Below are positions 23,938 to 63,486 of a stretch of 64,000 nucleotides of DNA, in pieces. The stretch comes from Rebecca billardiae RCC1528 (taxonomy: Eukaryota > Protista > Haptophyta). Position 1 is the stretch's first letter. Each line of letters opens with the position of its first letter. The notes under the pieces are model-generated. The model worked only from the letters and a program-made list of their open reading frames with translations. It had not been told where the DNA came from and made no database searches. The translations under genes and the position numbers were made by a program. The DNA lies in assembly GCA_965240325.2 (NCBI GenBank), contig OZ251239.1:434001-498000 (forward strand), written 5' to 3'.

Positions 23938-24040
23938 CAGGTGGATACGGGTGATCTGGACAGTGGCCGACCCAACTCACGCCGAGGCCTCCCTGGTTGC
24001 TCAGGAGTAGCCCCTGTGTCCAGTAGCCCGTATCCACCTG
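23938..24040. mobile_element. 103-bp MITE with TA TSD (Tc1/mariner-like) upstream of the HKR gene
   Basis: TA|caggtggatacggg...cccgtatccacctg|TA. 14-bp perfect TIR extending imperfectly to ~24 bp. Confidence 0.8.
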
Positions 24041-24536: not shown

Positions 24537-25095
24537 ACTCAGAAGGCTGGGCGTGTGTGACGCGTCATGACGTGACGTCACGTCATGACGTCATGACGTG
24601 ACGCGAGGAGTGGCGTAACGTGACGCCCGGACAGCGCTCTGCCCACGCCTGGCACACCCGGACTCACAGTAGTGCCACAGGCGGCTGCGCGCGCGCGCGC
24701 GCCGGGCGCGCCGCGTCGGCGCCGCGCGGTGGCGGCTGACGGGCGGCGGTGCAGCCCTGCCCCATTCGTACCAGCTCGTGGATCCTCCAGCTCCACGGCC
24801 ACATGGTGCGGGAGCGGGAGCCCTCGCCTTTGGGCGACGAGCCCACCTCCTCTGTGCGGTCCGGCCAGCCGGAACCCGGCGCACTCCCTTACGGACGAAA
24901 CTGTCAATGTCAACGACTGATTAGTTTCTTATAACACCAATCACAAGAATAATACGACATACGTAACGGACGAAACGGTCACCGCCAAAAGACGTGTTGC
25001 TATGACGCGTAAATGACGCGTAAAACGCATGACGTCATGACGTGACGCTAGAAATGGGCGTCATGACGCGTCATAGGGTCCCAGGCCTGCTGAGT
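24537..25095. mobile_element. Probable degenerate non-autonomous TIR element with TGACG subterminal arrays
   Basis: Dense tgacgt/tgacgc/catgacg arrays at ~24558-24625 and ~25003-25073. Imperfect inverted ends actcag(a/c)aggc(c)tggg. No clean TSD. Confidence 0.45.
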
Positions 25096-26198: not shown

Positions 26199-29100
26199 AT
26201 GCGACGCCGGGGGGCGCGCCGCAAAACTTGCTCCCGAGCTCGCCACGAGGGAGGGCTGGGCGTGAGCACGACGTTAAGGGGGTACGCCTTCCACGCGCGC
26301 GGGCGTCGTGCGCGCGCCGCGCGGTCGCGCGCGGCGCATCGCGCACACGCACCGACCGTTCTTGTTCCCTGCGGCCTCCCCTCGCAGGAGTTCCCCCTTC
26401 TCGCATCCGAGTCGGTCTGAGGCGTCGACGGTCGCCGGCCGCGACGAGCAGGCAAGTCGCACTCGTGATTCGTGAATGGTGCGAGGTCGCGGTGGGCCGG
26501 GGCGGGTGTGTGTGGTCGGCAGCGATGTTGGTGGCGTGCGCCGCCGCGCGCGCGCACACCGCACCACTCCCATGCGCCCCCGTCCCCTGTCTGACGATGT
26601 GCCCCGTGTGTGTGCTCGCGCGCGCCTGCGTTTGCCTCTCCGCCGCACGTGCTGGCACGTACCGCGCAGGCGGGCATGCGGCATGTGTCCGCCGGCCCCA
26701 GCAGTCAGGACGACCTGCTGCTCGTGGACGCGGTGATCGCAGCGGCTGACGACGCGTTGTGCACGCTGCAGTTCTCCTCGGCAGCAGCCCCGTGGACGTT
26801 CACCTTTGGTCTGGTGCTGTGCACCCTCGGCGTGGTCCACAGCACCGACGTGGGCCTTGGCGCCGCCGCCGCGCAGGTCACAGTGCCGCGCGTATGGGGT
26901 GGCAGCGGCGCCGACGCGCTGCTCACTGTGGTGGAGTGTGCGGAGTTGTTGGCTTCGCACCCGGACGCGCTGCGTGAGCGCGCGGACTCGGTGGCGCGCG
27001 TGTGCGCGGCGGCCCTTTGGTTCAGGGCCGTCGCGCAGATCGCCGTGCGCGCTGCCTGTGGTGCTTCCGCCGACGGGGCTCTGGCGGAGGAGGGCAGTTT
27101 CGCGGAGACGGCGCGACTGACGGCGTCCGCAGCGGCGCTCGGAGGGAAACCGGCGCCGCCGCCCGCAGGCACGTCCCACGCGCGCCGCTCGGGTGGCGCG
27201 GAGTCGCTGTCGCCGTCGTCCTCGGCGCCGACCCCAGGGCAGCACGCACGCGCCGCTGAGCACGCGCAGGGCGCATGCGCGTGGGCAGTGCGTGCGGCCT
27301 GGGCCGCCGCTCCGTTCCGGACGAAGCTGGCTCTGGCGGCGTTGTGCGCCCCCCGTCCGGATGCCCGCCCAGGTGCTGGGACTGGCGGAGGCGTCGACGA
27401 CGTGCTCCCGGCGACGACGGCGGCGGCGGCGGCGCCGTCGGGCGCTTGGACGGGCGCGCCCCCCCCGTGCCCGCCGCTGTCATGCCCGTCCGAGGCGGTG
27501 ATGTACTACGCGCGCGCCGTCTTCGGCGCGGACGCTGGCCAGTCCGAGCCTCTGTTCGTCGCCTTCGAGCGCGTGGCGTCGTGGCCAGCAGGCCGCAGCA
27601 GCCTCTGCGCGGACGCGCTGCGTGCGCGAGCGGCGGAGCTGCGCACGCAGGCGTACGCTGCCGTACGCGCGCTCTGCGCGCCCGTGCCGGCGCAGCCGCG
27701 CGCGTTCGTTCCCGCGTCGGCTGAGCAGGCACGCTGGCGCGACCAGCAGCTGCGTGCGGAACTCGAGAGCGCCCGCTTGGCGTGGCTCGGCGCCGTCTCG
27801 CAGGCCGTCGTGGGGGCCGGCGAAGGGGTGGCGGCAGATGGAGCGCCGCGCGCTGCCACGTCCGGCGCCGCCGCTGGACGTGACGCCGCCGTGCGCGCAG
27901 CCGCCGTCAGGCTGCGTGCTGCCGTGGTCGCCGACGGCCACGCCGGTCTTGCGGCCTTTGTGGCCGCGTGCGAGGACGGCTCGCTGCGCGAAGGGTGGCT
28001 GGCGCGGCCGTTGCTGCGGGCCGCCTCCACCATCGCCGAGCGCACCGTGTGGGCAGTGGTCATCCCGCTCGCGCCCGCGCTGGTGCACGTCGGCGAGGGC
28101 GCGCGTCTGCACCCCTTGCTCGACGCCACCTTCGCGCAGGCCCTCGTGGCCGGCGCGGCCGTCTCGCAGCCGCCAGTGACGCTGGTGCTGACGCTGTGCG
28201 GTGCGCACGCTGTCGTGGGCGCCGCTGCGCCGTGGCGCGACGAGGTGACGAGCGCGGCGTCGGGCGCGATGCGCCCTGCCTCCGCCGTGGTGGTGCCGCG
28301 CGCGCTGCCGCCTGCAGGCGAGCCGCCGCTGGGCGACGCGCTGGCGCCGACGCCTGCGGCGGCGCCCGCGCCCAGCCTCGACGACATGCTCGCGCATAAC
28401 GCCGCGGTTGGGCGCGCGCTGCAGGCCGCGTTTGGTGCCGCCGCTGCGGCACCGCAGCGTTTGGACATGGACATGGGCGTGCTGGTTGGCCCGTTGCGCG
28501 AGTACGTGCTGCAGCACGCAGGCCTCGGCGGGGACGGCGATGCGTCCATGCCCTTGCTGGATGAGGGTGGCGGCCTCCTGCGCACGGTGCACGCGTACCA
28601 GTCCGCGGACGCGGGCGGCGAGGCGGCCGCGCAGCGGCGCTGGGGGGTGGGCGACCACGGCTCCTCTGCGCGCTCGGTGCTGGGGTGCCGCGCCTTTGAG
28701 CGCGTGGTGGCGGCGCTGAAGGGCGTCGTGAGCTCGTTGTTCCGCGGCGACGCCTCTGACGGTGTCCGCGGCCTCGACGCGCTCGACCTCACGGCCTGGC
28801 ATGTCTTCGGGCGGCCGATGCGTCCGCCCGACGGGGGCCGCGGCACGTGCGACGACGGCGACGTCACGACGTACGGGTGGCACGTCGACGGCACGACCGA
28901 CGAGGACCATCTGTGGACGGCAGTGGTCCTCTTGCACTTGCCGCAAAGTGTGCCCACCAATCCCTTCCCGCTGCAGACGGTCGGCGCGCGCCCCCCCGGT
29001 GCGCGCGCCGACGCCGTGCCGCTGCACGGCGACGTTGCCCTGCAGGAAAGCGCAGGTGCAGTGCACATCTTCCCCGCCATGTGGCATCACCGCTCGGCCC

Positions 29101-32100
29101 CCAGTGCGCGCGCCGCGTCCTCGGGGTCCGTGCCGTCGTCCTCGCGCAAGAGGCCTACGCGTCAGGGTGCGGCGGACGCGCTCGTCCTGAAGGCTGTGTT
29201 CTCATTCGGGGGGCGGGGCCTCGCGGACACATTCCGCGCTTCGTTCACGCCGCCGCCGAGCGCGCCTCGCCCCGCCGCCACGCCGTGCGCGGCGCGCTCC
29301 GACCCGCCTCCCACGCCGTATCGGCTCGTGCCCGCCCTCGAGCGCGGGCTCCAGCACTCGTTTGAGACCAGGCTGCGCTGGGGGGCTGAGCCCACGCGCG
29401 CTGGCGCTGACGCCCGCTTCCGGCTCGGCTCGCCTGCGCACCACGAGTACGTCTCCCGCCTGGTGGTCGACCTGCCGACCGCGGCGCACGGCCAGCAGGC
29501 GCCGTCGGACCACGAGCAGCGGGCCTGGGCGCAGTCGGCGCTGCAGCTGGCGCTGCCCGTGTGCGCTGCCGACGGCGCGCAGCTCGCACATGAGCGCGCA
29601 GCGGCGCCTGCCGTGCCCCACGTCGTGGGGCTTGCGGGCGGCCACCCCGCGCCTCACGCCGACGGCGGTGGGCGCGCGCCCACCGCCGCGGCCGCGCACG
29701 GCACGGGCGCGCACGTGGGCGCCCCCTTTGACGAGGGCGCGCGGCCCCCACGCGCCGATGGCGTTGACGACCCGGCTGTCGGGCCGCGCGCGCCCACGGC
29801 CGTGCGTCGCCCCGACGCAGCGTCCGCCCCGCTGCGGCACACCGGCGCCCGCCAAAGCTCGAGCTCGGACGCGCCGGGCGCGCACGAGCCCGCGTCGCCG
29901 CGGCCTGGCGATGGGCACTCTTCGCCCGCTCGCGTGGCAACGCCAGCGCCGGGCGCACCCTGCGCTGCGGGCGACGCCGTGCCCTGCGTCGCGGTGACGG
30001 TGCCCGGCGCTGCTGTGTGCGCCGCGACGGCGCGCCCGCCACTCCACCCGGCGGGGCCGCCCCTCGACAGCAGCAGCGCGCGCGCGGTGATCGCGCAGCC
30101 GCCCGGCTGCGCCTCGCGCGCGCCGCCGCAGCCGCGCGGCGCCTCCGGTGGCGACGGCGGCAATGACGACGACGACGCGCGGCTGAGGGCCCTCCCTGCG
30201 CTGCCGCACGCAGGTGGCCTCTTGTCCGGCGGGGACCTCGCCCTGGCCCTGCACGCCGGCCAGCGTGCCCACCTCGGTGGCCACCTTGCCGACGCGTTGG
30301 CGACGGAGAAGTCGGCGCCCGCATGGGCGCGCGGTGGAGTGCCCCTCGTCGACGCGTCCGTGGGCCATAGGACGCACACGACGGCGGCCGCCCGCGGCAA
30401 CGCGCCGCTGTTCGCCCTGAGCGCGGACTGGCCGACGATGCGCGTCGGCGAGTCCGACGCCCGCGGCGAGCCGCTCGTCACGGACGCCGATCCCGCCAGT
30501 GCCGCCATCGACGTGCGCGACTGGGAGGAGGGCATCGCGGACGACGACTGCGCGGACGCCCGCGCGCGCGCGGCGCAGGCGGCACTGCAGGCGGACGAGT
30601 CCGCCGACAGCGACGCCGCTCGCGCGCGCGACCCGCTGGCTGCCCTCATGCCGTGTCCACCCATCGTCGCTCGCGCGCAGCCGCCCTCCACCGGTCCCGC
30701 CGAGCCCCGCGCCGGCCAGGCCGGCGCCCGGCTTGTTGCGCCGGAGTCGCTGCACCACGGCGGTGACGCCGGGTACTTCCGCTACTCCGCGCCGTCGAGC
30801 ACCTCGGCGAGCACGTCGGCGGCAGCGCACCGCCTCGAGCTCCGGCCCCTGGCACTGTGGAGGAAAATGGGCTTGCGGGCGCCGCGCCCGTACTCCCAGG
30901 TGAAGGCGGACGCCACCCTGCTCGAGCCCCCGATGGTGCGCCAGGTGTACCCGCGCCTCGCCGACGCGCTCACGCACGCCTCGGAGTGCGCGCTGCACCG
31001 GGGGGCCATGCCGCCGACGCGGCGCGTCGACCGCGCCAAGCTGACGATCGGATGCCCCACGCCCGGGTGCCCGTCCGTGGTGGTGGTGGGCCCGTCGAAG
31101 TACGTGGACACGTTTGGCGCGCCGCCGTGGGCCGTGCAACGCTCGGTCGCGCACGGCTCCATGTGCCGCAACCTGCGCATGGGCAAGGGGTCCGAGGAAC
31201 ACCCCATCGGCTCGCTGCCGCGCCCGACCAACCAGCCGGGCGTGCGCACGACGCCGTACTCCCAACACGAGCTCGGGCGGGCGATCGTCGAGGACTGGAA
31301 GGCGCGCTTGGCCCGGCGCGGGACCACGCACGCGCAGCTGTGCTACGGCCCGCAGCAAGCACGAGAGGTCGCGCGCCAGCTGGACGCAGAGCTCCCCATG
31401 GGTGAATCGCTCATCGCGCGAGCGCACAAAGAAGCGCGCGCCGAGATCTACGGAGACGACACGGCCATGTCGCGCGACCTCGTGGCCGTGTGCGCGTCGC
31501 TGTCGCAGGAGGGCAACGAGGTCGCGCCCATCATCTTCCACGAGAACTCGGTCGAGGACGCGCTGCTGGCCATGTTCGGCCGCGTGCACGACGAGGTGCA
31601 GCAGGGGCTGCCGGCGGGCGCGCAGCGCGCGGCCTTCAACCCCGACGCGGCGGAGGTGCAGAAGGCGCTGGCTGACGTGCGCGGCAAGAAGGCAGTGGGT
31701 GGCTTCCACTACGTGCCCAAGCAGGCCAAGGCGCTTTACCGCGAGCACTTTCACGCGAAGGGCAACACGGCCGCGTTCAGCGACGCGTGCTTCCTGCACC
31801 GCCCCGCCAGCGGTGGCGCGAAGCGCGCGGGTGCGCGCGCCCGCCGCACCCGGGCACGCCCTCGCGACGCCGCGTGCGTCCGTGCCGCCTCAGCGCCCGC
31901 CCGTCTTACCTGCCCGCGCGCACGCACGCGCGCGACGCAGGCATGCTCTTCGTCACGCTGGCCGTGAACGCCAACCGGCAGCTGTTCGTCTTGTGCGTGT
32001 CGTACATCGTCGACGTGGAGTGCCTGGACTCGTGGTGCGCGCACGTCGGATACCTCATGCAGCACCTCGGCGGGGCGGCTGTGTGGGACGACCCCAACGG

Positions 32101-43467: not shown

Positions 43468-43696
43468 CTCATCGGCCACGGCGGCCGTGGAGGGCGGCCG
43501 CTTGATGGCGGATACGCGCATCTCGCAGCCGTGTCTCGTCAGGCGGCAATCTGGAAACCTCGCTATCAGGGCGAGATTCTGCCTTTCGCGATTGACCAAG
43601 CAGGCGACCGAACCGTCGCAAACGAGTAAACGACGGCGCAATCAGCATTTTAGATAGAGTGATGTTTACCGAGCTGTCTCTAGCGTACCGATATTA

Positions 43697-43799
43697 CAGG
43701 TGGATACGGGTGATCTGGACAGTGGCCGACCCAACTCACGCCGAGGCCTCCCTGGTTGCTCAGGAGTAGCCCCTGTGTCCAGTAGCCCGTATCCACCTG
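43697..43799. mobile_element. 103-bp TA-flanked MITE, duplicate copy
   Basis: Identical to 23938-24040. Confidence 0.8.
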
Positions 43800-44295
43800 T
43801 ATCAAAGTCTCAACTCTCATATTACCCACTACTCACTACTGCGAAGGCCGTACTTGCCTATTATCGAGAATACCGCCGTATCCGTCGTCAAGTAGGGTAA
43901 AACCTGCCGCTCGACACAGTTGAATAGAAACTTGAAATTATAATAATATGATCATCACTATGATCCCGTTGACGAAAGCACTCGTCCGCAGCCTCGAGAT
44001 CAAACTCAAGCTTATGAGTTATGATATCATAGTTGCAGCGGATGAGCTCCAGAGCGGATTCGAGAATCGGGCCGATCGCCCGATCCATCGCAAAGATGTC
44101 GTCTAGCATGAACAGCATGAGCGACAGCAGCGTCGGCCCGGGCCGTTCCGCGCAGATAATCTCGGCGGTCGGGTCCGCGAATCAGTGCATTAGATCGCTG
44201 TGGGGGTGCGTACGGATAGCTTGTGAGTGGTTATAATGATGTCATCCTCGTTGGCTTGTCCGCCCCGTGCCGGCGTCATCGCCTCCCGGCTCAGA

Positions 44296-44854
44296 ACTCA
44301 GAAGGCTGGGCGTGTGTGACGCGTCATGACGTGACGTCACGTCATGACGTCATGACGTGACGCGAGGAGTGGCGTAACGTGACGCCCGGACAGCGCTCTG
44401 CCCACGCCTGGCACACCCGGACTCACAGTAGTGCCACAGGCGGCTGCGCGCGCGCGCGCGCCGGGCGCGCCGCGTCGGCGCCGCGCGGTGGCGGCTGACG
44501 GGCGGCGGTGCAGCCCTGCCCCATTCGTACCAGCTCGTGGATCCTCCAGCTCCACGGCCACATGGTGCGGGAGCGGGAGCCCTCGCCTTTGGGCGACGAG
44601 CCCACCTCCTCTGTGCGGTCCGGCCAGCCGGAACCCGGCGCACTCCCTTACGGACGAAACTGTCAATGTCAACGACTGATTAGTTTCTTATAACACCAAT
44701 CACAAGAATAATACGACATACGTAACGGACGAAACGGTCACCGCCAAAAGACGTGTTGCTATGACGCGTAAATGACGCGTAAAACGCATGACGTCATGAC
44801 GTGACGCTAGAAATGGGCGTCATGACGCGTCATAGGGTCCCAGGCCTGCTGAGT
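44296..44854. mobile_element. Degenerate TGACG-array element, duplicate copy
   Basis: Duplicate of 24537-25095. Confidence 0.45.
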
Positions 44855-45614
44855 CAGAATGACGGCGCCGCCGGATTCCGCGCTTAGGCGGCACTGGTCC
44901 GGCTGGAACCGCCGCACCGCGGGCTGAGGGGCGGGGGCGAGGGCGACTTCGATGAGCGCAGTCCTGGTGCTCCATACTGTCCGATCCGCTGGCTGTTTGG
45001 CGTGCGCGCGGGTATATATATATATGTATACTAGTCCTCGCTCAGCTGCAAATCAATCGCATCGACCGTCGTGCGCCTCAGGCCAGCGGGGCGCGGACTC
45101 AGTCAGACAAGTGCCGCTCGCGTGTGCCACTGGTCGCCGTAGGCGAAGCGAGGTCCGGACGAGGAGCAAGCTACCGGGCGCAGAGCCAAGCATGACCGCG
45201 TTCCGATGCTGCGCAAGCAACGCGTCGCCTTCGCACGGCAACTCGACGGCCGCAGCGGAGGCAGCGCCGGCCCCGCGCAGTGCGCGCGGCGGCGATGCAT
45301 TATTTTTGTAGTACTGTGGGGCTCCACATTCTTTACTACATCCTCATCCTGTCGGCGCGCTGTCGCATCGGCGCCCAGTCGGCGAGTTCGGACGACGACG
45401 TTTTGTGGACGACGGTGGGGCGAGGACGACGGGCGCTGGCGCGCCGCGAGGCGGCCGCAGCCCTCATCCAGGCCTCGCAGGCGGACGGCTGAACGAATCT
45501 TCCGGCGGCGCTACCATCGGCGACGGCTTCATGGGCGGTGACAGTTGGCGGGCGTCAATCTCGCCTGCCTGAGCTGTGTGCGTCTCTTATTCTTAGTAAA
45601 CTGTATACAGTTTA

Positions 45615-46103
45615 GGGAATCCTCCGGAAGTCCGACGAGGACCGACCGAGCAACCAGAACTCCGACAAACCTCCGCATCTCAGCACGGCGATTTCCGGAC
45701 TGGCACCCCCGCCAGTTTTCCGACGGCCAGAAGCTTCGGGAGCGAGCAAATGGCGCCGCTCGCCCGCAACGCGGAAGATACCGCTCGCGGCGAACCGGCG
45801 CGAACGCCCGCCTTGTATTCGGGCGGAGTACCCTAATGAGCGGGGGTGGGCACTTTCGTATTGCGCGCAGCCTGACGCCCACCCGCGACGAAACGACGCC
45901 GTCGACTCCTCCCGCCCGGACCGCCGCCGGAACGTTGCTCGTCAATTAGTTAGAGAAATGCGACGCCGGGGGGCGCGCCGCAAAACTTGCTCCCGAGCTC
46001 GCCACGAGGGAGGGCTGGGCGTGAGCACGACGTTAAGGGGGTACGCCTTCCACGCGCGCGGGCGTCGTGCGCGCGCCGCGCGGTCGCGCGCGGCGCATCG
46101 CGC
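45615..46103 (+). repeat. Left TIR of MULE (~489 bp)
   Basis: Reverse complement of 62892-63380; nearly perfect over the first ~395 bp. Confidence 0.93.
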
Positions 46104-49100
46104 ACACGCACCGACCGTTCTTGTTCCCTGCGGCCTCCCCTCGCAGGAGTTCCCCCTTCTCGCATCCGAGTCGGTCTGAGGCGTCGACGGTCGCCGGCCG
46201 CGACGAGCAGGCAAGTCGCACTCGTGATTCGTGAATGGTGCGAGGTCGCGGTGGGCCGGGGCGGGTGTGTGTGGTCGGCAGCGATGTTGGTGGCGTGCGC
46301 CGCCGCGCGCGCGCACACCGCACCACTCCCATGCGCCCCCGTCCCCTGTCTGACGATGTGCCCCGTGTGTGTGCTCGCGCGCGCCTGCGTTTGCCTCTCC
46401 GCCGCACGTGCTGGCACGTACCGCGCAGGCGGGCATGCGGCATGTGTCCGCCGGCCCCAGCAGTCAGGACGACCTGCTGCTCGTGGACGCGGTGATCGCA
46501 GCGGCTGACGACGCGTTGTGCACGCTGCAGTTCTCCTCGGCAGCAGCCCCGTGGACGTTCACCTTTGGTCTGGTGCTGTGCACCCTCGGCGTGGTCCACA
46601 GCACCGACGTGGGCCTTGGCGCCGCCGCCGCGCAGGTCACAGTGCCGCGCGTATGGGGTGGCAGCGGCGCCGACGCGCTGCTCACTGTGGTGGAGTGTGC
46701 GGAGTTGTTGGCTTCGCACCCGGACGCGCTGCGTGAGCGCGCGGACTCGGTGGCGCGCGTGTGCGCGGCGGCCCTTTGGTTCAGGGCCGTCGCGCAGATC
46801 GCCGTGCGCGCTGCCTGTGGTGCTTCCGCCGACGGGGCTCTGGCGGAGGAGGGCAGTTTCGCGGAGACGGCGCGACTGACGGCGTCCGCAGCGGCGCTCG
46901 GAGGGAAACCGGCGCCGCCGCCCGCAGGCACGTCCCACGCGCGCCGCTCGGGTGGCGCGGAGTCGCTGTCGCCGTCGTCCTCGGCGCCGACCCCAGGGCA
47001 GCACGCACGCGCCGCTGAGCACGCGCAGGGCGCATGCGCGTGGGCAGTGCGTGCGGCCTGGGCCGCCGCTCCGTTCCGGACGAAGCTGGCTCTGGCGGCG
47101 TTGTGCGCCCCCCGTCCGGATGCCCGCCCAGGTGCTGGGACTGGCGGAGGCGTCGACGACGTGCTCCCGGCGACGACGGCGGCGGCGGCGGCGCCGTCGG
47201 GCGCTTGGACGGGCGCGCCCCCCCCGTGCCCGCCGCTGTCATGCCCGTCCGAGGCGGTGATGTACTACGCGCGCGCCGTCTTCGGCGCGGACGCTGGCCA
47301 GTCCGAGCCTCTGTTCGTCGCCTTCGAGCGCGTGGCGTCGTGGCCAGCAGGCCGCAGCAGCCTCTGCGCGGACGCGCTGCGTGCGCGAGCGGCGGAGCTG
47401 CGCACGCAGGCGTACGCTGCCGTACGCGCGCTCTGCGCGCCCGTGCCGGCGCAGCCGCGCGCGTTCGTTCCCGCGTCGGCTGAGCAGGCACGCTGGCGCG
47501 ACCAGCAGCTGCGTGCGGAACTCGAGAGCGCCCGCTTGGCGTGGCTCGGCGCCGTCTCGCAGGCCGTCGTGGGGGCCGGCGAAGGGGTGGCGGCAGATGG
47601 AGCGCCGCGCGCTGCCACGTCCGGCGCCGCCGCTGGACGTGACGCCGCCGTGCGCGCAGCCGCCGTCAGGCTGCGTGCTGCCGTGGTCGCCGACGGCCAC
47701 GCCGGTCTTGCGGCCTTTGTGGCCGCGTGCGAGGACGGCTCGCTGCGCGAAGGGTGGCTGGCGCGGCCGTTGCTGCGGGCCGCCTCCACCATCGCCGAGC
47801 GCACCGTGTGGGCAGTGGTCATCCCGCTCGCGCCCGCGCTGGTGCACGTCGGCGAGGGCGCGCGTCTGCACCCCTTGCTCGACGCCACCTTCGCGCAGGC
47901 CCTCGTGGCCGGCGCGGCCGTCTCGCAGCCGCCAGTGACGCTGGTGCTGACGCTGTGCGGTGCGCACGCTGTCGTGGGCGCCGCTGCGCCGTGGCGCGAC
48001 GAGGTGACGAGCGCGGCGTCGGGCGCGATGCGCCCTGCCTCCGCCGTGGTGGTGCCGCGCGCGCTGCCGCCTGCAGGCGAGCCGCCGCTGGGCGACGCGC
48101 TGGCGCCGACGCCTGCGGCGGCGCCCGCGCCCAGCCTCGACGACATGCTCGCGCATAACGCCGCGGTTGGGCGCGCGCTGCAGGCCGCGTTTGGTGCCGC
48201 CGCTGCGGCACCGCAGCGTTTGGACATGGACATGGGCGTGCTGGTTGGCCCGTTGCGCGAGTACGTGCTGCAGCACGCAGGCCTCGGCGGGGACGGCGAT
48301 GCGTCCATGCCCTTGCTGGATGAGGGTGGCGGCCTCCTGCGCACGGTGCACGCGTACCAGTCCGCGGACGCGGGCGGCGAGGCGGCCGCGCAGCGGCGCT
48401 GGGGGGTGGGCGACCACGGCTCCTCTGCGCGCTCGGTGCTGGGGTGCCGCGCCTTTGAGCGCGTGGTGGCGGCGCTGAAGGGCGTCGTGAGCTCGTTGTT
48501 CCGCGGCGACGCCTCTGACGGTGTCCGCGGCCTCGACGCGCTCGACCTCACGGCCTGGCATGTCTTCGGGCGGCCGATGCGTCCGCCCGACGGGGGCCGC
48601 GGCACGTGCGACGACGGCGACGTCACGACGTACGGGTGGCACGTCGACGGCACGACCGACGAGGACCATCTGTGGACGGCAGTGGTCCTCTTGCACTTGC
48701 CGCAAAGTGTGCCCACCAATCCCTTCCCGCTGCAGACGGTCGGCGCGCGCCCCCCCGGTGCGCGCGCCGACGCCGTGCCGCTGCACGGCGACGTTGCCCT
48801 GCAGGAAAGCGCAGGTGCAGTGCACATCTTCCCCGCCATGTGGCATCACCGCTCGGCCCCCAGTGCGCGCGCCGCGTCCTCGGGGTCCGTGCCGTCGTCC
48901 TCGCGCAAGAGGCCTACGCGTCAGGGTGCGGCGGACGCGCTCGTCCTGAAGGCTGTGTTCTCATTCGGGGGGCGGGGCCTCGCGGACACATTCCGCGCTT
49001 CGTTCACGCCGCCGCCGAGCGCGCCTCGCCCCGCCGCCACGCCGTGCGCGGCGCGCTCCGACCCGCCTCCCACGCCGTATCGGCTCGTGCCCGCCCTCGA

Positions 49101-52100
49101 GCGCGGGCTCCAGCACTCGTTTGAGACCAGGCTGCGCTGGGGGGCTGAGCCCACGCGCGCTGGCGCTGACGCCCGCTTCCGGCTCGGCTCGCCTGCGCAC
49201 CACGAGTACGTCTCCCGCCTGGTGGTCGACCTGCCGACCGCGGCGCACGGCCAGCAGGCGCCGTCGGACCACGAGCAGCGGGCCTGGGCGCAGTCGGCGC
49301 TGCAGCTGGCGCTGCCCGTGTGCGCTGCCGACGGCGCGCAGCTCGCACATGAGCGCGCAGCGGCGCCTGCCGTGCCCCACGTCGTGGGGCTTGCGGGCGG
49401 CCACCCCGCGCCTCACGCCGACGGCGGTGGGCGCGCGCCCACCGCCGCGGCCGCGCACGGCACGGGCGCGCACGTGGGCGCCCCCTTTGACGAGGGCGCG
49501 CGGCCCCCACGCGCCGATGGCGTTGACGACCCGGCTGTCGGGCCGCGCGCGCCCACGGCCGTGCGTCGCCCCGACGCAGCGTCCGCCCCGCTGCGGCACA
49601 CCGGCGCCCGCCAAAGCTCGAGCTCGGACGCGCCGGGCGCGCACGAGCCCGCGTCGCCGCGGCCTGGCGATGGGCACTCTTCGCCCGCTCGCGTGGCAAC
49701 GCCAGCGCCGGGCGCACCCTGCGCTGCGGGCGACGCCGTGCCCTGCGTCGCGGTGACGGTGCCCGGCGCTGCTGTGTGCGCCGCGACGGCGCGCCCGCCA
49801 CTCCACCCGGCGGGGCCGCCCCTCGACAGCAGCAGCGCGCGCGCGGTGATCGCGCAGCCGCCCGGCTGCGCCTCGCGCGCGCCGCCGCAGCCGCGCGGCG
49901 CCTCCGGTGGCGACGGCGGCAATGACGACGACGACGCGCGGCTGAGGGCCCTCCCTGCGCTGCCGCACGCAGGTGGCCTCTTGTCCGGCGGGGACCTCGC
50001 CCTGGCCCTGCACGCCGGCCAGCGTGCCCACCTCGGTGGCCACCTTGCCGACGCGTTGGCGACGGAGAAGTCGGCGCCCGCATGGGCGCGCGGTGGAGTG
50101 CCCCTCGTCGACGCGTCCGTGGGCCATAGGACGCACACGACGGCGGCCGCCCGCGGCAACGCGCCGCTGTTCGCCCTGAGCGCGGACTGGCCGACGATGC
50201 GCGTCGGCGAGTCCGACGCCCGCGGCGAGCCGCTCGTCACGGACGCCGATCCCGCCAGTGCCGCCATCGACGTGCGCGACTGGGAGGAGGGCATCGCGGA
50301 CGACGACTGCGCGGACGCCCGCGCGCGCGCGGCGCAGGCGGCACTGCAGGCGGACGAGTCCGCCGACAGCGACGCCGCTCGCGCGCGCGACCCGCTGGCT
50401 GCCCTCATGCCGTGTCCACCCATCGTCGCTCGCGCGCAGCCGCCCTCCACCGGTCCCGCCGAGCCCCGCGCCGGCCAGGCCGGCGCCCGGCTTGTTGCGC
50501 CGGAGTCGCTGCACCACGGCGGTGACGCCGGGTACTTCCGCTACTCCGCGCCGTCGAGCACCTCGGCGAGCACGTCGGCGGCAGCGCACCGCCTCGAGCT
50601 CCGGCCCCTGGCACTGTGGAGGAAAATGGGCTTGCGGGCGCCGCGCCCGTACTCCCAGGTGAAGGCGGACGCCACCCTGCTCGAGCCCCCGATGGTGCGC
50701 CAGGTGTACCCGCGCCTCGCCGACGCGCTCACGCACGCCTCGGAGTGCGCGCTGCACCGGGGGGCCATGCCGCCGACGCGGCGCGTCGACCGCGCCAAGC
50801 TGACGATCGGATGCCCCACGCCCGGGTGCCCGTCCGTGGTGGTGGTGGGCCCGTCGAAGTACGTGGACACGTTTGGCGCGCCGCCGTGGGCCGTGCAACG
50901 CTCGGTCGCGCACGGCTCCATGTGCCGCAACCTGCGCATGGGCAAGGGGTCCGAGGAACACCCCATCGGCTCGCTGCCGCGCCCGACCAACCAGCCGGGC
51001 GTGCGCACGACGCCGTACTCCCAACACGAGCTCGGGCGGGCGATCGTCGAGGACTGGAAGGCGCGCTTGGCCCGGCGCGGGACCACGCACGCGCAGCTGT
51101 GCTACGGCCCGCAGCAAGCACGAGAGGTCGCGCGCCAGCTGGACGCAGAGCTCCCCATGGGTGAATCGCTCATCGCGCGAGCGCACAAAGAAGCGCGCGC
51201 CGAGATCTACGGGGACGACACGGCCATGTCGCGCGACCTCGTGGCCGTGTGCGCGTCGCTGTCGCAGGAGGGCAACGAGGTCGCGCCCATCATCTTCCAC
51301 GAGAACTCGGTCGAGGACGCGCTGCTGGCCATGTTCGGCCGCGTGCACGACGAGGTGCAGCAGGGGCTGCCGGCGGGCGCGCAGCGCGCGGCCTTCAACC
51401 CCGACGCGGCGGAGGTGCAGAAGGCGCTGGCTGACGTGCGCGGCAAGAAGGCAGTGGGTGGCTTCCACTACGTGCCCAAGCAGGCCAAGGCGCTTTACCG
51501 CGAGCACTTTCACGCGAAGGGCAACACGGCCGCGTTCAGCGACGCGTGCTTCCTGCACCGCCCCGCCAGCGGTGGCGCGAAGCGCGCGGGTGCGCGCGCC
51601 CGCCGCACCCGGGCACGCCCTCGCGACGCCGCGTGCGTCCGTGCCGCCTCAGCGCCCGCCCGTCTGACCTGCCCGCGCGCACGCACGCGCGCGACGCAGG
51701 CATGCTCTTCGTCACGCTGGCCGTGAACGCCAACCGGCAGCTGTTCGTCTTGTGCGTGTCGTACATCGTCGACGTGGAGTGCCTGGACTCGTGGTGCGCG
51801 CACGTCGGATACCTCATGCAGCACCTCGGCGGGGCGGCTGTGTGGGACGACCCCAACGGCGTCACCATCTCGGACGGCCAGAAGGGCCTGCGCGGCGCGT
51901 GGAAGCTGCTGTGCCCGCGCAGGCACCTCTTCCTGTGCACGTTCCACAAGCGCCAGACCTTCATCACGGGCTACGCACACTCGGCGAACGAGGTGCCCAC
52001 CATCCTGCGCGTGTTCGACGCGTGCGTGGACGCGTTGACCGAGGAGGTGTGGGAGGCCGCCTGGGTGGAGATGCCAGAGTCGGCCAAGCGCATCCTCGAC

Positions 52101-55100
52101 GTCATCCCCCGCGAGGAGCTCTTCCCGTGCTTCGCGCCGGTGTCCCTGCGCGGCTACGTGACGTCCGCGCCGGCGGAGTCCTTCATGCACTGGCTGCTGC
52201 CGGTGCGCAAGGCGCAGGGCCCGGTGTGGATGCTGCTCGACCTGCACGACAACCTCTTTCGCCTCTACGCGACGCACCGCAGCGTCGCCGTGCGCCACGC
52301 CCTGAAGCCCGACGCCGATGATGAGGTGCACGGGTTGCCGCCACGGCACCTGGAATACGTGCGCCAGCAGGTGAGCACGGCGCGCACGCTCTCTCAGGTG
52401 GAAGTGCACCGTGTCCTCGACGGGCCGCACGCAGGTGCCCTGCGCATGCTCAACACCACGGACGGCTCGGCGCCGCGCCACGTGTACCTCGACGAGTTCC
52501 GGTGCTGCGCGTTGCTGCGCCGCAAGCGCCTGCCGTGCATGCACTTCTGCCGCGTGGCGACCTCCGTCGGCCGTGCCATGGGCACGTGCTTGCCCCAGGA
52601 CCTGCGCTGCGAGACGTGGTTCGCGCAGGTGGGCCTTCGGGTCGAGCGCGACGCCAACGACACCCGGGTGGACACGCTCGGGCGCGTCGTGGCCATCACC
52701 AAGCTCGACGTCATCACACCGCCCCAGCGCCTGGAGGACGCCATTGCGGCTCTGCTGCTGCCCGCTCTCGCCAAGCGCGCCCTGCTCGAAAAGTACGTGG
52801 CCATGCCAGCGGTGCCCGCGCGCGTGGGCAGGCCCGCGTCCTCGGCGCGACGGCTGGCGTTCTGGGAGGGCCGCGCCGGGGCGCGCCACCCGCGCGCACC
52901 GCGCGCGCGCGCGCCGCGCGTGCAGTTGGGCAAATCCGCGGCGTCGTACGTGCGCCCCTTGAGGGAGCAAGCCCCGGACGGCGACTTCGCCCGGCGCGTG
53001 CGCGAAGCGCACCGCGACGAGCTCGCGCGTGTGCTCGAGGGGCTGCCGGAGCACCTGTACGGCATCGCGCACACGCACGTGCTCGACGACACTAACGTGC
53101 TCGTGCGCGTGGCCGGCCCGCTCCGCGAGGGTGTGGTTGCGAACCAGCGACGTCGCCACTTTGCCACGTACACGGCCGGCACGACCGCCGCCGCGCAACT
53201 GCGCTGCTGCGCGTGTTTCGACCCCGAGGCCGCGGACCTCAGCGCGGCGTGGCCGGCGGACTCGCCGCCGATCGACCCCCGACTGGCGTGCCAGGGCTGC
53301 GCCTGCTTCATCCACTCGCCCGCGCAGTGCAAGTATGTGTGGCACCTCGGCGCGCTGGACAGCGGGCTGTACATGTGCACGTGCTGCTACTTCCTGCTCG
53401 TCGCGGGGGCGTGGAAGCGCCTGCGCGAAGCGCGCGCAGCCGCGGCGGGCGAGGCGGCGGCGCCCGACGGGCCGCGCGGCGCGAGGCCGGAGGACGTGCC
53501 ATACCACCGTATGCGCGGACAGCACGGCGGTGGGGCCGCGCGCGGCAACCCGGCGCGCACCGCAGGCGCGCGCGGGGGCCGCGCAGGCGGCCGCGGGGGC
53601 CGCGGCGCGGCGGCGCCCGCGCCCGGGCGCGCGCAGCCGGCGGCCGCCCAGACGCGCGACGGCGCCGCCGCGGCGGGCGCGGGCGCGCGCGGCGGCCCGC
53701 GCCGGCACTGCGCGCGCGCGATCGCCTCGCAGGCACTTGGCGGCACCGGCGTACGCATGGGCTTCGCGACGGCACCGATGCCAAACGCCGCCACGCAGCG
53801 GCCGGCCGCACCGCCTGAGGGCACGACGGGCCCGCGCAGTGGCGCGGACGCCGGCACGACGCCCGCCGCGCGCGCGCGCGCGCACGCCGCGGAGCCGCTG
53901 CCGGCCACGGGCGACACAGTACCGCTGGCGGCGACTGAGCATCCCTTCCGCCCCCCGTGGCCCGGCGCCCACGCGCCACCGCCACCGGGTGCGCGAGTCC
54001 CTCGGGCGCGCGCGGGCGCGGCAGAGCCACCGGCGGAGGCGGCGGAGTCCGAGTCGGCGTACGCGCGCCTCGCTGACGACAGCGCCGCAGTGCTCGCGGC
54101 GGTGCAGCGCATACCTGGCATCGGTCGGGGCAGGGCAGCCATGTTCATGTGCAGTCGCGGCCTGTCAGCACCGTGGCCCACGCTCAGCGAGACGGCCGGT
54201 GACGCATTCGGCGCGTCCAGCGCGACGACGGGCAAGGTGCTGGCACAGTTTGCGCGCGCCGCCGCCGCCCCCGCCGAGCTGGCGCGCGCGCACGCGTCGC
54301 CCGCCGTGCCCGCCGAGGGCAGTGGCGGCGCGAGGGGCTCGGGCGGCGCCGCTCCGAACGCGGCCTCCCACGTGTGGGCGCACGCAGGCGCACACGACGT
54401 CGCGGCGGCGGCGGCGGGCCTGGCGGACGTCCTGGCTGGCGGCGGCGGCGCGGGCGCAGGCGCCGCAGGCCAGGCGGGCGCCGCGGCTGGCACCTCCCGC
54501 GCGGGCGCGGGGGCCGCGTCTGCGCCGTGCGCGCCCAAGCGCCCTCGGACTGCGGCCGCCGCCGACGACGCGGGCGGTGCGGCCGCGGATGGGCGCCTGC
54601 CGCCGGCTTCGCGCCAGGCGGCGGGCGCCCGCGCGTCCACGGCGGGGCCATCGTCGGCGGCGCGGTCGGTGCCGACGCCGGGCCCAACGCGCGCAGGCGC
54701 CGACCTGCTGGGGACGGCGCGTGGCACGTCTGGTGCCGCGGACGACACAGCCGTCGCCACCGCGGACGACGCGGTCGCCCACTTGGCGCGCACTGGTCTG
54801 CCGGTGCGCGACGCTGGAGCGCGCGCCGCGGGCGATGACCGCCACGCGCCGGTGCGCCTGTTCCACGCCGCCGACGCCGCCGCCGGCGCAGACGACCACG
54901 ACGCCGAATTCGCCCGATTACGGCTGTGCTGCGCCCAGGCAGTGCTCGACGACCTCTGGGGCGCGGGCGCCGCACAGCCGTTGCCCGTGCCAGCCGACGG
55001 TGACGACGTGCTGCACGCGGTGCTCGCGCACGCGCACGCGCGGGCGCGTCCGCCCAGCACGCTTGAGGCCCTGTGGTGGGCGTGCTGCGCGCGGCGCCTG

Positions 55101-57341
55101 CGCGCGGCGGCCGCGTCGTGGCTGGCCGCGCACGCGCATGCGACGCCCACCGAGCACTCCGTCGGCTGGGGTGGCGCGCTGGGCCCGGCCGAGTCGGCAG
55201 AGGACCTGCGAGCGCAGGCGCGCTTCATCGGCTTGTGCGGCGCTGACGTGCGCGCACTTCCCCCGGAGAGCGCAGGTGGCGACGAAGCTGGGCAGGCGCG
55301 TTTGCGGGCTCTGCGCATGGTGGCCCCCGACGACTCGTCGTCGTGGCACACCCCCGGCCAGGGCGTGCGCGATCTGGACGACGCAGTGACGCTGGCAGTG
55401 CGAGCGGCGGAGTACACGTGCGACGGGTACGTCAGCAGCCCGGGCAACACGTGCGATGGCCCTGAGTGGTACGCGGCAGTCGCTCGCGCCGCCGGCGTGC
55501 ACCTCCTCGTCTTCGACATGGCCTACGCACGCCGAGCTCGCGACGTGCACGGCGTCGCCATGCGTGAGCACGTGCGGTGGTATCCTCCGACGGCAGTGCG
55601 CGTGCCGCCGGCGCCGGCGGCGCCACGCGCTCGCGGGGGCGCCGGCGCGAAGCGCCGGCGCGCCGACACGCCCGACGCAGGCGCCGCGCACGCGGACGCA
55701 CGTCCGCTGTGCGAAGCGCGCCTGAGCCTGGGACGCGAGACGCACGCACGCGTCCTGCGCACGCTCGACGTCGGGGCGATGGGCACCGGCTGGGTGGCCA
55801 TCGTGCGCAACGTGTGTCCTCGCCGGCAGTTCTACGCAGTGGTTGCGCCGCAGGCCACCCCGCGCGCGCACGGGGTGTTGCCGGCGTCGCGCTGGAGTGC
55901 GTTCCAGCCGGCTGCGGACGCGCACGTGAGGCTGGCGTCCAGGCGGCGCGGGTGCGAGGTGGATGCGCTGGACCCGAGCGCGTTCGGCACCGAGGTGGTC
56001 CCTCTCGACGGCTCCGACGGGGCATGGCGGTGCGACGTGGGCTTGGGGCTGCGCCTGGCCTTGGGCGAGACCGCCGCTGACGTGACGGCGGAGCGATGCC
56101 GCGCTGACGTGACGGCGGGTGATGCCGCGCCACGCGGCGCAGCCGCGCCGCGCGCCGCGGCGGCGACGGACGCCACCGTGGACGCGGGTGCGGCGGCGCC
56201 GGCGCCCGCCGGGCACGGGGCTGCGCCGGCTGCGGTGGCTCCGGCGGCCGCCGCACACGTGCACGCGCCGGTGGACGACGCCGCGGTCCTGCTCGAGCGC
56301 CTGGGCTTCCCCGCGCTGCCCCTGCCGCCGGCGTTGCCGCCCGAGGCGCGGGCTGGTGCACAGACCGGAGCACCCGGCGGCGTGGATGGCGACGGCAACG
56401 TCGCCGCGGCCATCCGCGAGCTCTTCGGCGGCGGCACGAGCGTGCAGGACGTTCCCGGCGATGGCGACTGCTACTTTCACGCGTGGCTCGCGCACGACAC
56501 GCGTGGCGTGCGGGCCGACCTGCCCGCCGCCAACGCGCGCGCGCAGACGCTGCGCGACGGCGTGTGCTCGTACATCGCGTCGTGGGAGGACGAGCACGGA
56601 CCGGGCGAGACGCTCGGCACGGCGTCGGCCACGGCGTCGGCGGCAAGCGCGCTCGGCATGCTTGGCGTCAAGCCAGCATCCATCCCCCGGGCCCGCACCG
56701 GCCAAGGACTCGAAGTGCAGGACGAGGACTGGCAGGAGGTGCTGCCACTGCCACTGCGACATACTGGAGGCGTGCGGACGCTGGGAGCAGCGGCGCGCGC
56801 GTACGCGCGCGGCGCCCGGTACACGGGCGACGGCGCTGGCGCGCATGCGGCGCGCGCTGGTGCGTGGTCGGCGTGGGGCTCGCACGTCGCGACGGCGCGC
56901 GCCACGGGCCTGCCGCTGGTGGTCCTTGAGCTGCGCGGCGGGGCTACGCCGGAGGAGGCGGCGTGGCGCGCGTTCACCGACAACGTCTGGTTCTACCCCG
57001 TGCAGACGCGGCCGGGCCTTCGCTGGCGGCGGACTGACGACGGCGGGCGCAAGGGCAGCGTCGCCGTGAGCACGCATGCGCACCTGCGCCTGCGTGACGA
57101 GCGCACGCGGCGCGCCTTGCAGCGTCTGGACGTCACGCAGTTGGGCACGACGTGGATGGCCGTGGTGTACGACGGCCGTTGCCACTTCGGCGCGGTGGTG
57201 TCGGCGACGGCGCCCCTGGAGGCGCGTTCGGCGCGCGACAACAACGAGGGGCGTCTGGCGCACTTCATGCGAGCTACATCACCCTTGCAGGGGTACGTTG
57301 AGTGCGCACCACGCCGCCTGAGCACGCCAGGTGCCAGCTAA
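45958..57341 (+). CDS. MULE transposase polyprotein (~3,600 aa): 2OG-Fe(II) dioxygenase, WRKY-like Zn finger, DDE, SWIM, PHD, HhH, pseudo-OTU, OTU. Exons 45958-46040?, 46147-46210?, 46429-51589, 51700-57341 (alternative start ATG 46435)
   Basis: GWHVD...FPAMWHHRS...K; CPTPGC...HGSMC; D(51541) D(51873) CTFH E(52176); RCC...LPCMH; CCAC...CQGC..FIH...C...YMCTCC; RIPGIGRGRA; VPADGDDVLHA; VPGDGDCYFHA...YDGRCHF. The four-exon model totals 10950 nt in one open frame. Confidence 0.88.
51590..51699 (+). other. Intron within the MULE DDE domain (110 nt)
   Basis: gcgG|gtgcgc...ctgac...acgcag|GC. Fuses the 1785-aa and 1931-aa ORFs right after the first catalytic Asp. Confidence 0.9.
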
Positions 57342-60300: not shown

Positions 60301-63037
60301 CTAAGGCGACTCGCACGTCCGCGTCGAGGACGTAGGGCAACGGGCCGTGCACACCGAAGTGCTCGCCTGCTGCGCGCAGGGCGAGCTCAGAGACAGAGCC
60401 GCCGACGCTCGCGGCGGCGCCGGCGTAGAACTCGCGCACCGCATCGTCCACCTCGCTGCGCGTGTACAAGGCGCCCGAGGCGCACAGCTCGCGCACAGCG
60501 TCGGCATCCGTGAGCACGCCGAAGTGCTTGTTGTTCGTGGCATCGCACACCACGTTCACCACGCGGACCGTGCCGCCGCCGCCGCCGAGATGCCGTGACG
60601 CGAACGCGCGGTTGAACCTGAGGATGGCCGGCACCAATCGGCCGTTGTTCGGTTGCGGCCCGTGCTTCGTCGTCCGCGCGTCCGCATCCGCCACCGCGCT
60701 GGGGCGCACCAGCACGTGCGCGTGCGCCTGCGCCGGCGCGGCGGGCGTGTCTCCGCCGAACCTCCGGCGTTTCCCGTAGATGCCGCTGAAGAAATGATCC
60801 ACGTGCTGCAAGACATCGCTCATCGCGAACAGCTCGCGTGAGCCGCCGTCGCCGCTGCCGTAGACGCCGCCGCCGTCGTCAGCGTGGCCGCCACCGCCGG
60901 GTTGCGCGGCGGCGGGCGCCTGCTGTGGTGCATGGGAGTGCGACCCCGCTGCGCCAGCCGCCGCTCCACCCATCGACGCCGTCGCCGCCCGTGCCACCTC
61001 GCCCGAGGCAGCACCACCGGAGTCATCTGAGTTGACGCCCGCGGGGCCGTCGGCGGCCGCAGCCGGCGCCGGCGGCGCCGGCGCCGCCGCGGTGACGCCG
61101 GTGGCAGCCGCCCGCGCCTCGGCGGGTGCGCGTGGCGGCTCGGCGCGTTCGGCGCGCGTCGCGGTCGACGCCGTCGCCGCCCGTGCCACCTCGCCCGAGG
61201 CAGCACCACCGGCGTCATCTGAGTTGACGCCCGCGGGGCCGTCGGCGGCCGCAGCCGGCGCCGGCGGCGCCGGCGCCGCCGCGGTGACGCCGGTGGCAGC
61301 CGCCGGCGCCTCGGCGGGTGCGCGTGGCGGCTCGGCGCGTTCGGCGCGCGTCGCGGGGCCGCCGGCGGCCGCAGGCGGCGGCGCCGGCGCCGCCGCGGTG
61401 ACGCCGGTGGCACCCGCCAGCGTTTCGACGGGTGCGCGTGGCGGCTCGGCGCGTTCGTCGCTTGTCGCGGGGCCGCCGGCGGCCGAAGGCGGCGCCGCCG
61501 GCGCCGCCGTGACGCCGGCGACCGCCGTCGGCGCCGGCGGCGGCGCCGGCGCCGGCGCCAGCGTTGCGACGGGTGCGCGTGGCGGCTCGGCGCGTTCGTC
61601 GCTTGTCGCGGGGCCGCCGGCGGCCGCAGGCGGCGCCGCCGGCGCCGCCGTGACGCCTGCGACCGCCGTCGGCGCCGACGGCGGCGCCGGCGCCGAGGTG
61701 ACGCCGGGCAGCGCTTCGGCGGGTGGCGCAAGTGGCGGCTGGCGGCGCATGGCCCGCGTCCGCACGCCGCCGCGCCCGTTGTGGTGAGCCGCCCCCTGCG
61801 CGCCGCGCTGCCCCGCAGCCTCCTGCTGGATGCCCTGGGCGGCGTAGCTGCCGCCGCCCACGCGCGTGCTGCCGTGGCGGGCCGGCCGGCCGTCGGCGCC
61901 CTGCTCGGCGCCCTGCTCGGCGCCCGGCTGGGCGCCCTGCTCGGCGCCCTGCTCGGCGCCCGGCTCGGTGCCCTGCTCGGCGGCCTGCTTGCCATGCCCG
62001 GCGCCCGGCTGGGCGCCCTGCTCGGCGCCCTGCTCGGCGCCCTGCTCGGCGCCCTGCTTGCCCTGCTCGGCGCCCGGCCCGGCGCCCGGCCCGGCGCCCT
62101 GCCCGGCGCCCGGCTGGGCGCCCTGCTCGGCGCCCTGCTCGGCGCCCGGCTCGGCGCCCTGCTCGGCGGCCTGCTTGCCCTGCTCGGCGCCCGGCTCGGC
62201 GCCCGGCCCGGCGCCCGGCTGGGCGCCCTGCTTGCCCTGCTCGGCGCCCTGCTCGGCGCCCGGCTCGGCGCCCTGCTCGGCGGCCTGCTTGCCCTGCCCG
62301 GCGCCCTGCCCGGCGCCCGGCTGGGCGCCCTGCTCGGCGCCCTGCTCGGCGCCCGGCTCGGCGCCCGGCTCGGCGCCCTGCTCGGCGGCCTGCTTGCCCT
62401 GCTCGGCGCCCGGCTCGGCGCCGAGCAGGGCGCCGAGCAGGGCGCCCTGCTCGGCGCCCTGCTCGGCGCCCTGCCCCTGCTCGGCGCACTGCTCGCCGGC
62501 GGGCGGCGCACGCACGTGCGCCGCTGGCACCCTCTTCAACGAGCCTGCGCCCTCGACTGTTCCATCCGCGGACGCACCGACGGTGTCGCCAGGGACCGCA
62601 GCCCACGCATGAGCAGACACTCCCTCGGCAGCCCGGAGGACGTACGTCTGCACTCGCCCGTGTGCGCCGACCCCAAGCGCCGCGACCACAGCACGGACTG
62701 CCGGTGCACCCTGCTCGTACACCACGTCCACAGCAGCCCCGTTCGCGAAGCTCGTCGCAGTCGGAGTCGTCCCCGCAGGCGGCGGCGGCCTGCGCGCGGC
62801 ACGCGGGCACGACGCCGCGCAACGACGCAGAACGCACGGCGTGACGACATGCGCGAGCGCACGCCGCGCGCGCGAACGAAGACACACGCGCGCGCGATGC
62901 GCCGCGCGCGACCACGCGGCGCGCGCACGACGCCCGCGCGCGTGGCAGGCGTACCCCCTTAACGTCGTGCGAGGCATCGATCGTCCCTCGTGGCGAGCTC
63001 GGGAGCAAGTTTTGCGGCGCGCCCCCCGGCGTCGCAT
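57338..63037 (-). CDS. Convergent MULE gene B, unknown function (exons 63037-62955, 62789-~57338; 3' end uncertain)
   Basis: 1899-codon ORF starting in the right TIR with an in-frame 165-nt GT-AG intron (62954-62790). Tetrapeptide repeats, Ala/Pro repeats, a globular-looking central region and a charged coiled coil. Confidence 0.7.
60975..61720 (-). repeat. Imperfect long coding repeats (AEPPRAP...GVTAA...AAAGGPAT) in gene B
   Basis: Four to five degenerate copies visible in the translation. Confidence 0.8.
61894..62490 (-). repeat. 12-nt coding minisatellite ([16 protein letters not shown] tetrapeptides) in gene B
   Basis: ggcgccgagcag-type units with occasional 9-nt GKQ units. Confidence 0.95.
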
Positions 63038-63380
63038 TTCTCTAACTAATTGACGAGCAACGTTCCGGCGGCGGTCCGGGCGGGAGGAGTCGACGGCGTC
63101 GTTTCGTCGCGGGTGGGCGTCAGGCTGCGCGCAATACGAAAGTACCCACCCCCGCTCATTAGGGTACTCCGCCCGAATACAAGGCGGGCGTTCGCGCCGG
63201 TTCGCCGCGAGCGGTATCTTCCGCGTTGCGGGCGAGCGGCGCCATTTGCTCGCTCCCGAAGCTTCTGGCCGTCGGAAAACTGGCGGGGGTGCCAGTCCGG
63301 AAATCGCCGTGCTGAGATGCGGAGGTTTGTCGGAGTTCTGGTTGCTCGGTCGGTCCTCGTCGGACTTCCGGGGTTTTCCC
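62892..63380 (-). repeat. Right TIR of MULE (~489 bp)
   Basis: Inverted copy of 45615-46103. Confidence 0.93.
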
Positions 63381-63486
63381 TACAGTTTACTAAGAATAAG
63401 AGACGCACACAGCTCAGGCAGGCGAGATTTTATTTGTTTCAGCATCAGAGAAAACCGAAAAAGAAAGTCGCCGCCGACGAACGACG

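Follow-up and report, generated by a model that had tools for sequence, protein, structure and literature searches.

A candidate protein-hydroxylase-like Fe(II)/2-oxoglutarate oxygenase domain in the transposase frame of a haptophyte Mutator element

Does a giant transposase gene of the haptophyte Rebecca billardiae RCC1528 encode a highly diverged Fe(II)/2-oxoglutarate (2OG) oxygenase, and would such an enzyme act on nucleic acid or on protein? The question is raised by a 64,000-nucleotide stretch of contig OZ251239.1 (assembly GCA_965240325.2, forward-strand positions 434,001 to 498,000), hereafter called the window, which holds a 17.9-kb, 75% GC, Mutator-type element with terminal inverted repeats (TIRs) of ~540 nt each. 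An earlier reading of the DNA, here called the original prediction, had placed an oxygenase domain with a double-stranded beta-helix (DSBH) inside the transposase of this element. We conclude that the region probably has a true DSBH oxygenase fold, and we consider it reasonably likely that it is a highly diverged, prolyl-4-hydroxylase (P4H)-like and probably active protein hydroxylase domain in the frame of the Mutator transposase. Coordinates refer to the window, and those of the features are collected in Table 1.

The four motif strings from which the domain had been proposed all lie in frame +1 at the positions originally given for them, within a 1,785-codon open reading frame (ORF; 46369-51726). 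TYGWHVDG begins at nt 48628, with H758 at 48640 and D760 at 48646; WHHRS begins at 48841, and LKAVFSF, which contains K861, at 48946. The originally delimited segment, 48540-48970, comprises the core strands only, and the full putative domain is larger (~48289-49002). A second copy of that segment, reported at 28781-29211, is also there and is identical to it at 431 of 431 positions.

Two families of the element are found in the 72-Mb genome of this very GC-rich alga. Family A, represented in the window, comprises 10 dispersed, near-identical copies, in which the domain is 100% identical in protein sequence. These copies show 0-2 nt differences over 3.9 kb and have therefore been amplified very recently; the element is young and so probably active. 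Family B consists of three copies (one of them frameshifted) and is the sole diverged relative, with 50% amino-acid identity to A; a profile search of the same genome at E 10 returned only A and B and no third family. Despite its divergence, family B keeps every motif (TTYGWHVD, WTAV, VHIFP.M..HRSA and KAVF.FG), and the motifs fall within those blocks of the domain that are conserved best, so that the conservation of the H-D-H triad among element copies, proposed as a check on the prediction, is confirmed. H758, D760 and H827 are thus present in both families together with K861, their placement on strands being predicted. The family B counterpart of WHHRS is LYHRS, which leaves H827 as the only retained His of that pair.

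All six frames are open in this DNA, which makes an independent test of coding important. Over the domain, mismatches between A and B amount to 0.34, 0.31 and 0.50 at codon positions 1, 2 and 3, the GC content at third positions (GC3) is 0.86, and dN/dS is ~0.46. Judged from these values, the claimed frame is coding and under purifying selection.

Coding constraint leaves the nature of the fold to be argued from comparison. One alternative to an oxygenase is that this conserved coding stretch of the transposase has another fold or no stable fold, so that the HxD...H...K pattern would be a chance resemblance, strengthened by the skewed composition of a gene with 77% GC. We compared a profile of A and B with one built from 27 host PF13640 (P4H-type) domains by hhalign and obtained a score of 22.7 (P = 0.011) for an alignment that spans the HxD motif, the WTAV strand after it and the distal His. 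Such a P-value is weak by itself and leaves room for chance. The controls, however, speak against it. In 150 column shuffles the mean score was 12.7 (standard deviation [SD] 2.4); the observed score lies ~4 SD above this mean and was reached by one shuffle of the 150, and the reversed query scored 11.8. True pairs of DSBH families from the same genome (P4H/AlkB, P4H/PF03171, AlkB/PF03171) gave 22.2-27.9, a range that includes the observed value. Against other oxygenase families the A+B profile was less similar: the score was 15.7 with the host PF03171 profile and 15.9 with nine host AlkB domains, the latter not significant (P = 0.19, 12 residues aligned). The similarity is also specific to position. 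When the first 1,790 residues were scanned with sliding windows against the host P4H profile, only three windows, all of which cover the domain, scored above 20 (20.3, 22.5 and 22.9), and all remaining windows scored 16.8 or less. These comparisons support the PF13640 prolyl-hydroxylase type, over AlkB or PF03171, as the nearest branch, at a level of homology that, to judge from the profiles, is in the twilight zone.

Two further comparisons point to the same family. When A, B and 20 host PF13640 domains were aligned by MAFFT without guidance, exactly three columns proved invariant: H758, D760 and H827. In ESM-Atlas, A and B scored 0.92 and 0.93, respectively, and the top clusters for both were nearly all PF13640, P4H or OGFOD2-like. 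By the calibration of the tool itself, 0.9 or more is also attained by 4-10% of shuffled proteins, which favors the chance explanation, and the shared features (150-152 of 256) are fewer than the 170 typical for members of one family and fall in the tool's 'distant relative or chance' range.

This last result is one of several that weigh against an oxygenase. Library searches, in which (as in the folding below) both exons of the gene were analyzed as separate sequences, were empty for the domain: Pfam at E 10 with whole ORFs and pieces of A and B gave nothing, NCBIfam gave nothing, PHROGs returned one irrelevant 15-bit match, and searches of PDB sequences by phmmer and by profile yielded noise and no oxygenase. 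No match was obtained when the A+B profile was run exhaustively with HMMER against 1.84 billion protein representatives, nor was any relative found among metagenome contigs (back-translated; domain and transposase core) or viral contigs; only two effective sequences exist. A plain hidden Markov model (HMM) of the host P4H domains gave no significant match in a six-frame scan of both elements. With PF13640 itself, neither A nor B matched at E ≤ 10 or reached the gathering threshold of 27 bits, and none of the 58 host matches listed in the genome-wide scan lies on an element copy. Nor is there RNA evidence of expression: no run for this organism is recorded as RNA, and the contigs obtained from the one run found were short, of low depth and free of spliced joints.

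The host's own complement of 2OG oxygenases is unusually large, with at least 58 PF13640 matches alongside 34 PhyH, 16 JmjC, 13 PF03171 and 12 AlkB matches.

Structure prediction adds evidence on both sides. AlphaFold on A and B alone, without guidance, gave an unusable model (predicted local distance difference test [pLDDT] 38), for which Foldseek found no match; both results count against the oxygenase reading as well. When this low-confidence model was compared with a structure library by VIA, the best Z was 4.7, yet Fe/2OG oxygenases, among them FTO, AlkB, a PHD, T7H and DAOCS, were enriched and made up ~13 of the best 50 matches, in a library of 48,161 chains of which only 162 attain Z 5 against a DSBH model. 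Guided by a 22-row alignment, AlphaFold reached a pLDDT of 57.8, highest (68-79) on the ligand-bearing strands. The guided model aligned best to PHD2 (Z 12.4), a Trichoplax PHD (12.3), a Pseudomonas P4H and a Dictyostelium PHD (both 11.6) and OGFOD1 (11.2), with AlkB homologs (8.3-9.5) and NgTET1 (8.4) at lower ranks. This result is circular, since host P4H sequences were part of the input, and shows compatibility only. The 'double-stranded beta-helix signature' of the original prediction therefore stands as far as the motifs and the remote profile similarity are concerned, but it is not matched by a confident unguided model or by any entry of an HMM library. On balance, we regard a chance resemblance as unlikely, if worth serious attention: several independent tests agree on one family, specified in advance, and on one position.

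If the fold is that of a DSBH oxygenase, its substrate class has to be considered separately. The original prediction had also brought up the AlkB domains of some RNA viruses; such domains in plant RNA viruses, like the TET/JBP genes of fungal transposons, are thought to oxidize methylated bases. The domain might likewise oxidize methylated bases in element DNA or RNA, a possibility that gains from precedents in other elements: TET/JBP dioxygenases borne by transposons are documented in fungi (PMC12730594), and a putative 2OG oxygenase is fused with ParB in red-algal Plavaka elements (bioRxiv 10.1101/2025.02.11.637652). Moreover, the substrate is not fixed by the fold alone, and the guided model still aligns to AlkB homologs and NgTET1 at the Z-scores given above. 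We nevertheless hold a nucleic-acid substrate to be improbable. The host AlkB profile was not significantly similar, the language-model neighbors are of P4H and OGFOD types, the AlkB-type R-x5-R after the distal His is absent in both families, and no TET-type Cys-rich module was seen in the sequence adjoining the domain. The TET/JBP model PF12851 matched nothing genome-wide, although the same search was silent in every control genome, which leaves its sensitivity unverified. As for the earlier suggestion that the motif spacing is prolyl-hydroxylase-like rather than TET-like, spacing alone cannot separate P4H from TET; it is the profile and language-model comparisons that favor this assignment. 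The relatives of the domain are thus probably P4H/PHD/OGFOD-type protein hydroxylases and not TET/JBP or AlkB, as far as such comparisons go.

Relative to the host P4H domains, the alignments reveal two inserts, the first of ~20 amino acids between the first core strand and HxD, and the second of ~25 amino acids before the Lys strand. In the second, the two families have S, K, P and R columns in common, and a conserved basic patch (RKRPTR at nt 48904-48921 in A, GKKPRR in B) looks like a nuclear localization signal. We considered whether the inserts could be introns and rejected this explanation, on weak evidence, because both families stay in frame and the second insert has conserved residues. 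Two features of this part of the domain count against an active oxygenase. The distal His and the Lys are separated by 34 residues; in typical enzymes this spacing is ~10. Additionally, the register of K861 is 1-3 columns off the host R/K column and varies by alignment. With the alignment register unsettled, K861 is only a candidate for the 2OG-binding residue.

The large inserts among the core strands, the uncertain register of the basic residue and the extreme divergence would all suit a DSBH relic that has lost catalysis and whose role in the transposase is now structural or one of binding. We consider such a relic very improbable, however, because the three metal ligands and the Lys are kept across 50% divergence in the best-conserved blocks, and their retention would be unexpected after loss of catalysis.

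Directly upstream of the oxygenase-like domain lies a block (47689-48060, ORF residues ~441-565) that is better conserved than any other in the N-terminal half of the protein. It reaches 83% A/B identity per 30 amino acids and includes the segments RTVWAVVIPL... and PPVTLVLTL.... No Pfam model matches this block, which could represent a partner domain or one that binds the substrate.

From these comparisons we infer a fold, a catalysis, a substrate class and a biological role as follows. The region 48289-49002 would encode a highly diverged Fe(II)/2OG oxygenase with a DSBH fold in the N-terminal half of the transposase, whose gene, of ~3,620 codons and probably spliced once, would belong to a recently active 17.9-kb Mutator/MULE (Mutator-like element) transposon. 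Iron would be bound by H758, D760 and H827, and the 2OG C5 carboxylate by K861 of the last strand. Most likely, the enzyme would use O2 and 2OG to hydroxylate a side chain of some protein in the nucleus, an activity preferred because every comparison that discriminates between branches favors that of the protein hydroxylases. It might target the transposase complex or, among host proteins, one of chromatin or of the ubiquitin pathway. A further proposal is a good deal more speculative and in our view rather doubtful: an active hydroxylase and a C-terminal OTU-like deubiquitinase, combined in one Mutator transposase, might form a toolkit that senses O2 and 2OG and edits the ubiquitin pathway. 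If it exists, this toolkit could make transposition dependent on oxygen or metabolic state, or it could hydroxylate a host factor of silencing or proteolysis and thereby stabilize or disable that factor; it would be a transposon counter-defense of a kind so far undescribed.

Table 1. Positions, strands and supporting evidence of the features discussed; all are window coordinates.
Feature	Position	Strand	Evidence or remark
Left TIR	45557..46103	+	Self-BLAST against 63429-62892: 95.8% over 548 nt
Exon 1 of giant transposase gene	46369..51589	+	ORF, A/B alignment, codon-position divergence
Putative Fe(II)/2OG oxygenase (DSBH) domain	48289..49002	+	~238 amino acids; profile, language-model and alignment evidence
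HxD motif, H758-V-D760	48640..48648	+	Proposed first and second iron ligands; invariant across both families and 20 host P4H domains
H827, second His of WHHRS	48847..48849	+	Proposed distal iron ligand; invariant alignment column
Second insert (~25 amino acids), distal-His strand to Lys strand	48862..48939	+	Gap opposite every host P4H domain
K861, last predicted strand	48949..48951	+	Candidate 2OG C5-carboxylate ligand; conserved in family B
Probable 110-nt GT..AG intron inside MULE domain	51590..51699	+	Joins ..AKRAG to MLFVTL..; splice signals from sequence
Exon 2	51700..57341	+	MULE DDE core, SWIM-like and Cys-rich fingers, C-terminal part with OTU-like Cys motif
Right TIR	62892..63429	-	Self-BLAST against left TIR
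Second domain copy	28530..29243	+	Identical; within truncated upstream element duplicate 25798-40385

Exon 1 encodes, in order, an N-terminal conserved region, the oxygenase-like domain, a long low-complexity linker and a segment of Cys/His DNA-binding-like character. It ends within the MULE domain, which begins ~2.9 kb downstream of the oxygenase-like domain and continues across the probable intron into a second long ORF (51546-57341). At 51590-51699, family A shifts frame and family B reads through 55 unconserved residues, which would be open by chance; conservation resumes at MLFVTL. The two ORFs are joined most simply by the probable 110-nt intron, which would make them one gene of ~3,620 codons. 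Exon 2 has 56% identity to family B, and its PF10551 (MULE) match at ~51696-51947 is weak (18.5 bits, E = 0.0028), under the 27.6-bit cut-off. The earlier description of the domain as lying 'inside a DNA transposase polyprotein' is thus upheld in that the domain appears to share the coding frame of a MULE transposase, with the qualification that the MULE match is below the cut-off and that the connection runs through a probable intron.

The C-terminal part of exon 2 (55146-57338, plus strand) has the OTU-like Cys motif DGDCYFHAW, and a piecewise scan of this part gave no Pfam match to OTU at E 1 or less. A second, convergent gene is represented by a minus-strand ORF of 1,899 codons (57338-63037), which contains a long array of degenerate 12-nt (some 9-nt) tandem units at 61793-62500.

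The left TIR has a 9-nt insertion, tatacagtt (45604-45612), that is absent from the right one. A target-site duplication, which in Mutator elements measures 8-11 bp, is not visible at the TIR ends (45548-45556, gcgggcgtc; 63430-63438, ttatttgtt), possibly because of a local duplication of ~19.6 kb. This direct duplication (20827-40385 and 40586-60173, 99.56% identity) includes the truncated element copy: besides 5 kb of host sequence, it comprises the element's first 14.6 kb. Either a true tandem event or an assembly artifact could explain it. Elsewhere in the window, 15354-17682 holds three tandem diverged units of ~850-940 bp with 83-92% identity.

How does the domain compare with known systems? 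As in the PF13640 protein hydroxylases (P4H/PHD/OGFOD), the Y-x-x-H-x-D motif is followed by a hydrophobic strand that contains a Thr, the distal His is embedded in G-x-x-x-x-F...H-x-x-x-P, and the last predicted strand has a single candidate Lys. The domain differs from them in failing the Pfam model at E 10, in its two long inserts and in its His-Lys spacing of 34. It is also fused within a transposase, whereas they are stand-alone or endoplasmic-reticulum/cytosolic enzymes, and among the 1.84 billion representatives searched it has no detectable homologs outside this genome. We found no paper in the literature that describes a P4H-type domain in a Mutator transposase.

Transposons with 2OG oxygenases have so far been mainly fungal carriers of TET/JBP DNA demethylases, which are read as anti-silencing cargo. 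The original prediction had cited the association of TET/JBP with Kyakuja-Dileera-Zisupton transposons in fungi; that association is documented, together with others in Plavaka, hAT, Harbinger, EnSpm and Helitron elements (PMC12730594), but the domain described here has no TET/JBP signal. Like those elements, the haptophyte one would carry a 2OG/Fe oxygenase as plausibly beneficial accessory cargo of a cut-and-paste DNA transposon. In contrast to them, its oxygenase is assigned to another branch, with no PF12851 signal, is fused in frame to the transposase instead of being encoded by a separate gene, and resides in an alga instead of a fungus; Mutator is not among the superfamilies listed in the abstract of PMC12730594.

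A closer parallel in an alga is the accessory gene PAG3 of red-algal Plavaka (CACTA) elements, which encodes a ParB-like domain and a putative 2OG oxygenase with 2OPW_A as its best HHpred match (bioRxiv 10.1101/2025.02.11.637652). In both cases a DNA transposon of an alga carries a putative, very remote 2OG oxygenase, that of PAG3 being recognized at the HHpred level. We take 2OPW_A to be a phytanoyl-CoA-dioxygenase-type protein. PAG3 is a separate gene coupled to a ParB DNA-binding domain, whereas in the haptophyte element the P4H-type match lies inside a Mutator transposase with an OTU-like region at its C-terminus. Helitron captures of 2OG oxygenases are also cited in the same preprint (bioRxiv 10.1101/2025.02.11.637652).

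Transposases enlarged by accessory enzymes directed at protein modifiers are likewise represented by MULE, Helitron and Ginger elements with ULP1 or OTU cysteine-protease domains, and OTU is mentioned in Ginger and Helentron elements (PMC2836005, PMC6431247). Our literature searches brought up no description of a hydroxylase or oxygenase domain within such protease-carrying elements.

The proposal made here is a well-defined hypothesis, not a demonstrated function, and it rests on twilight-zone similarity and two sequences; because the element is young and probably active, the question would be open to experiment with the alga in culture. If the proposal is correct, an in-frame protein-hydroxylase domain would extend the theme of oxygenase cargo to another branch of the enzymes, another transposon superfamily and an algal host, and it would suggest that proteins, rather than DNA, are what some elements edit.

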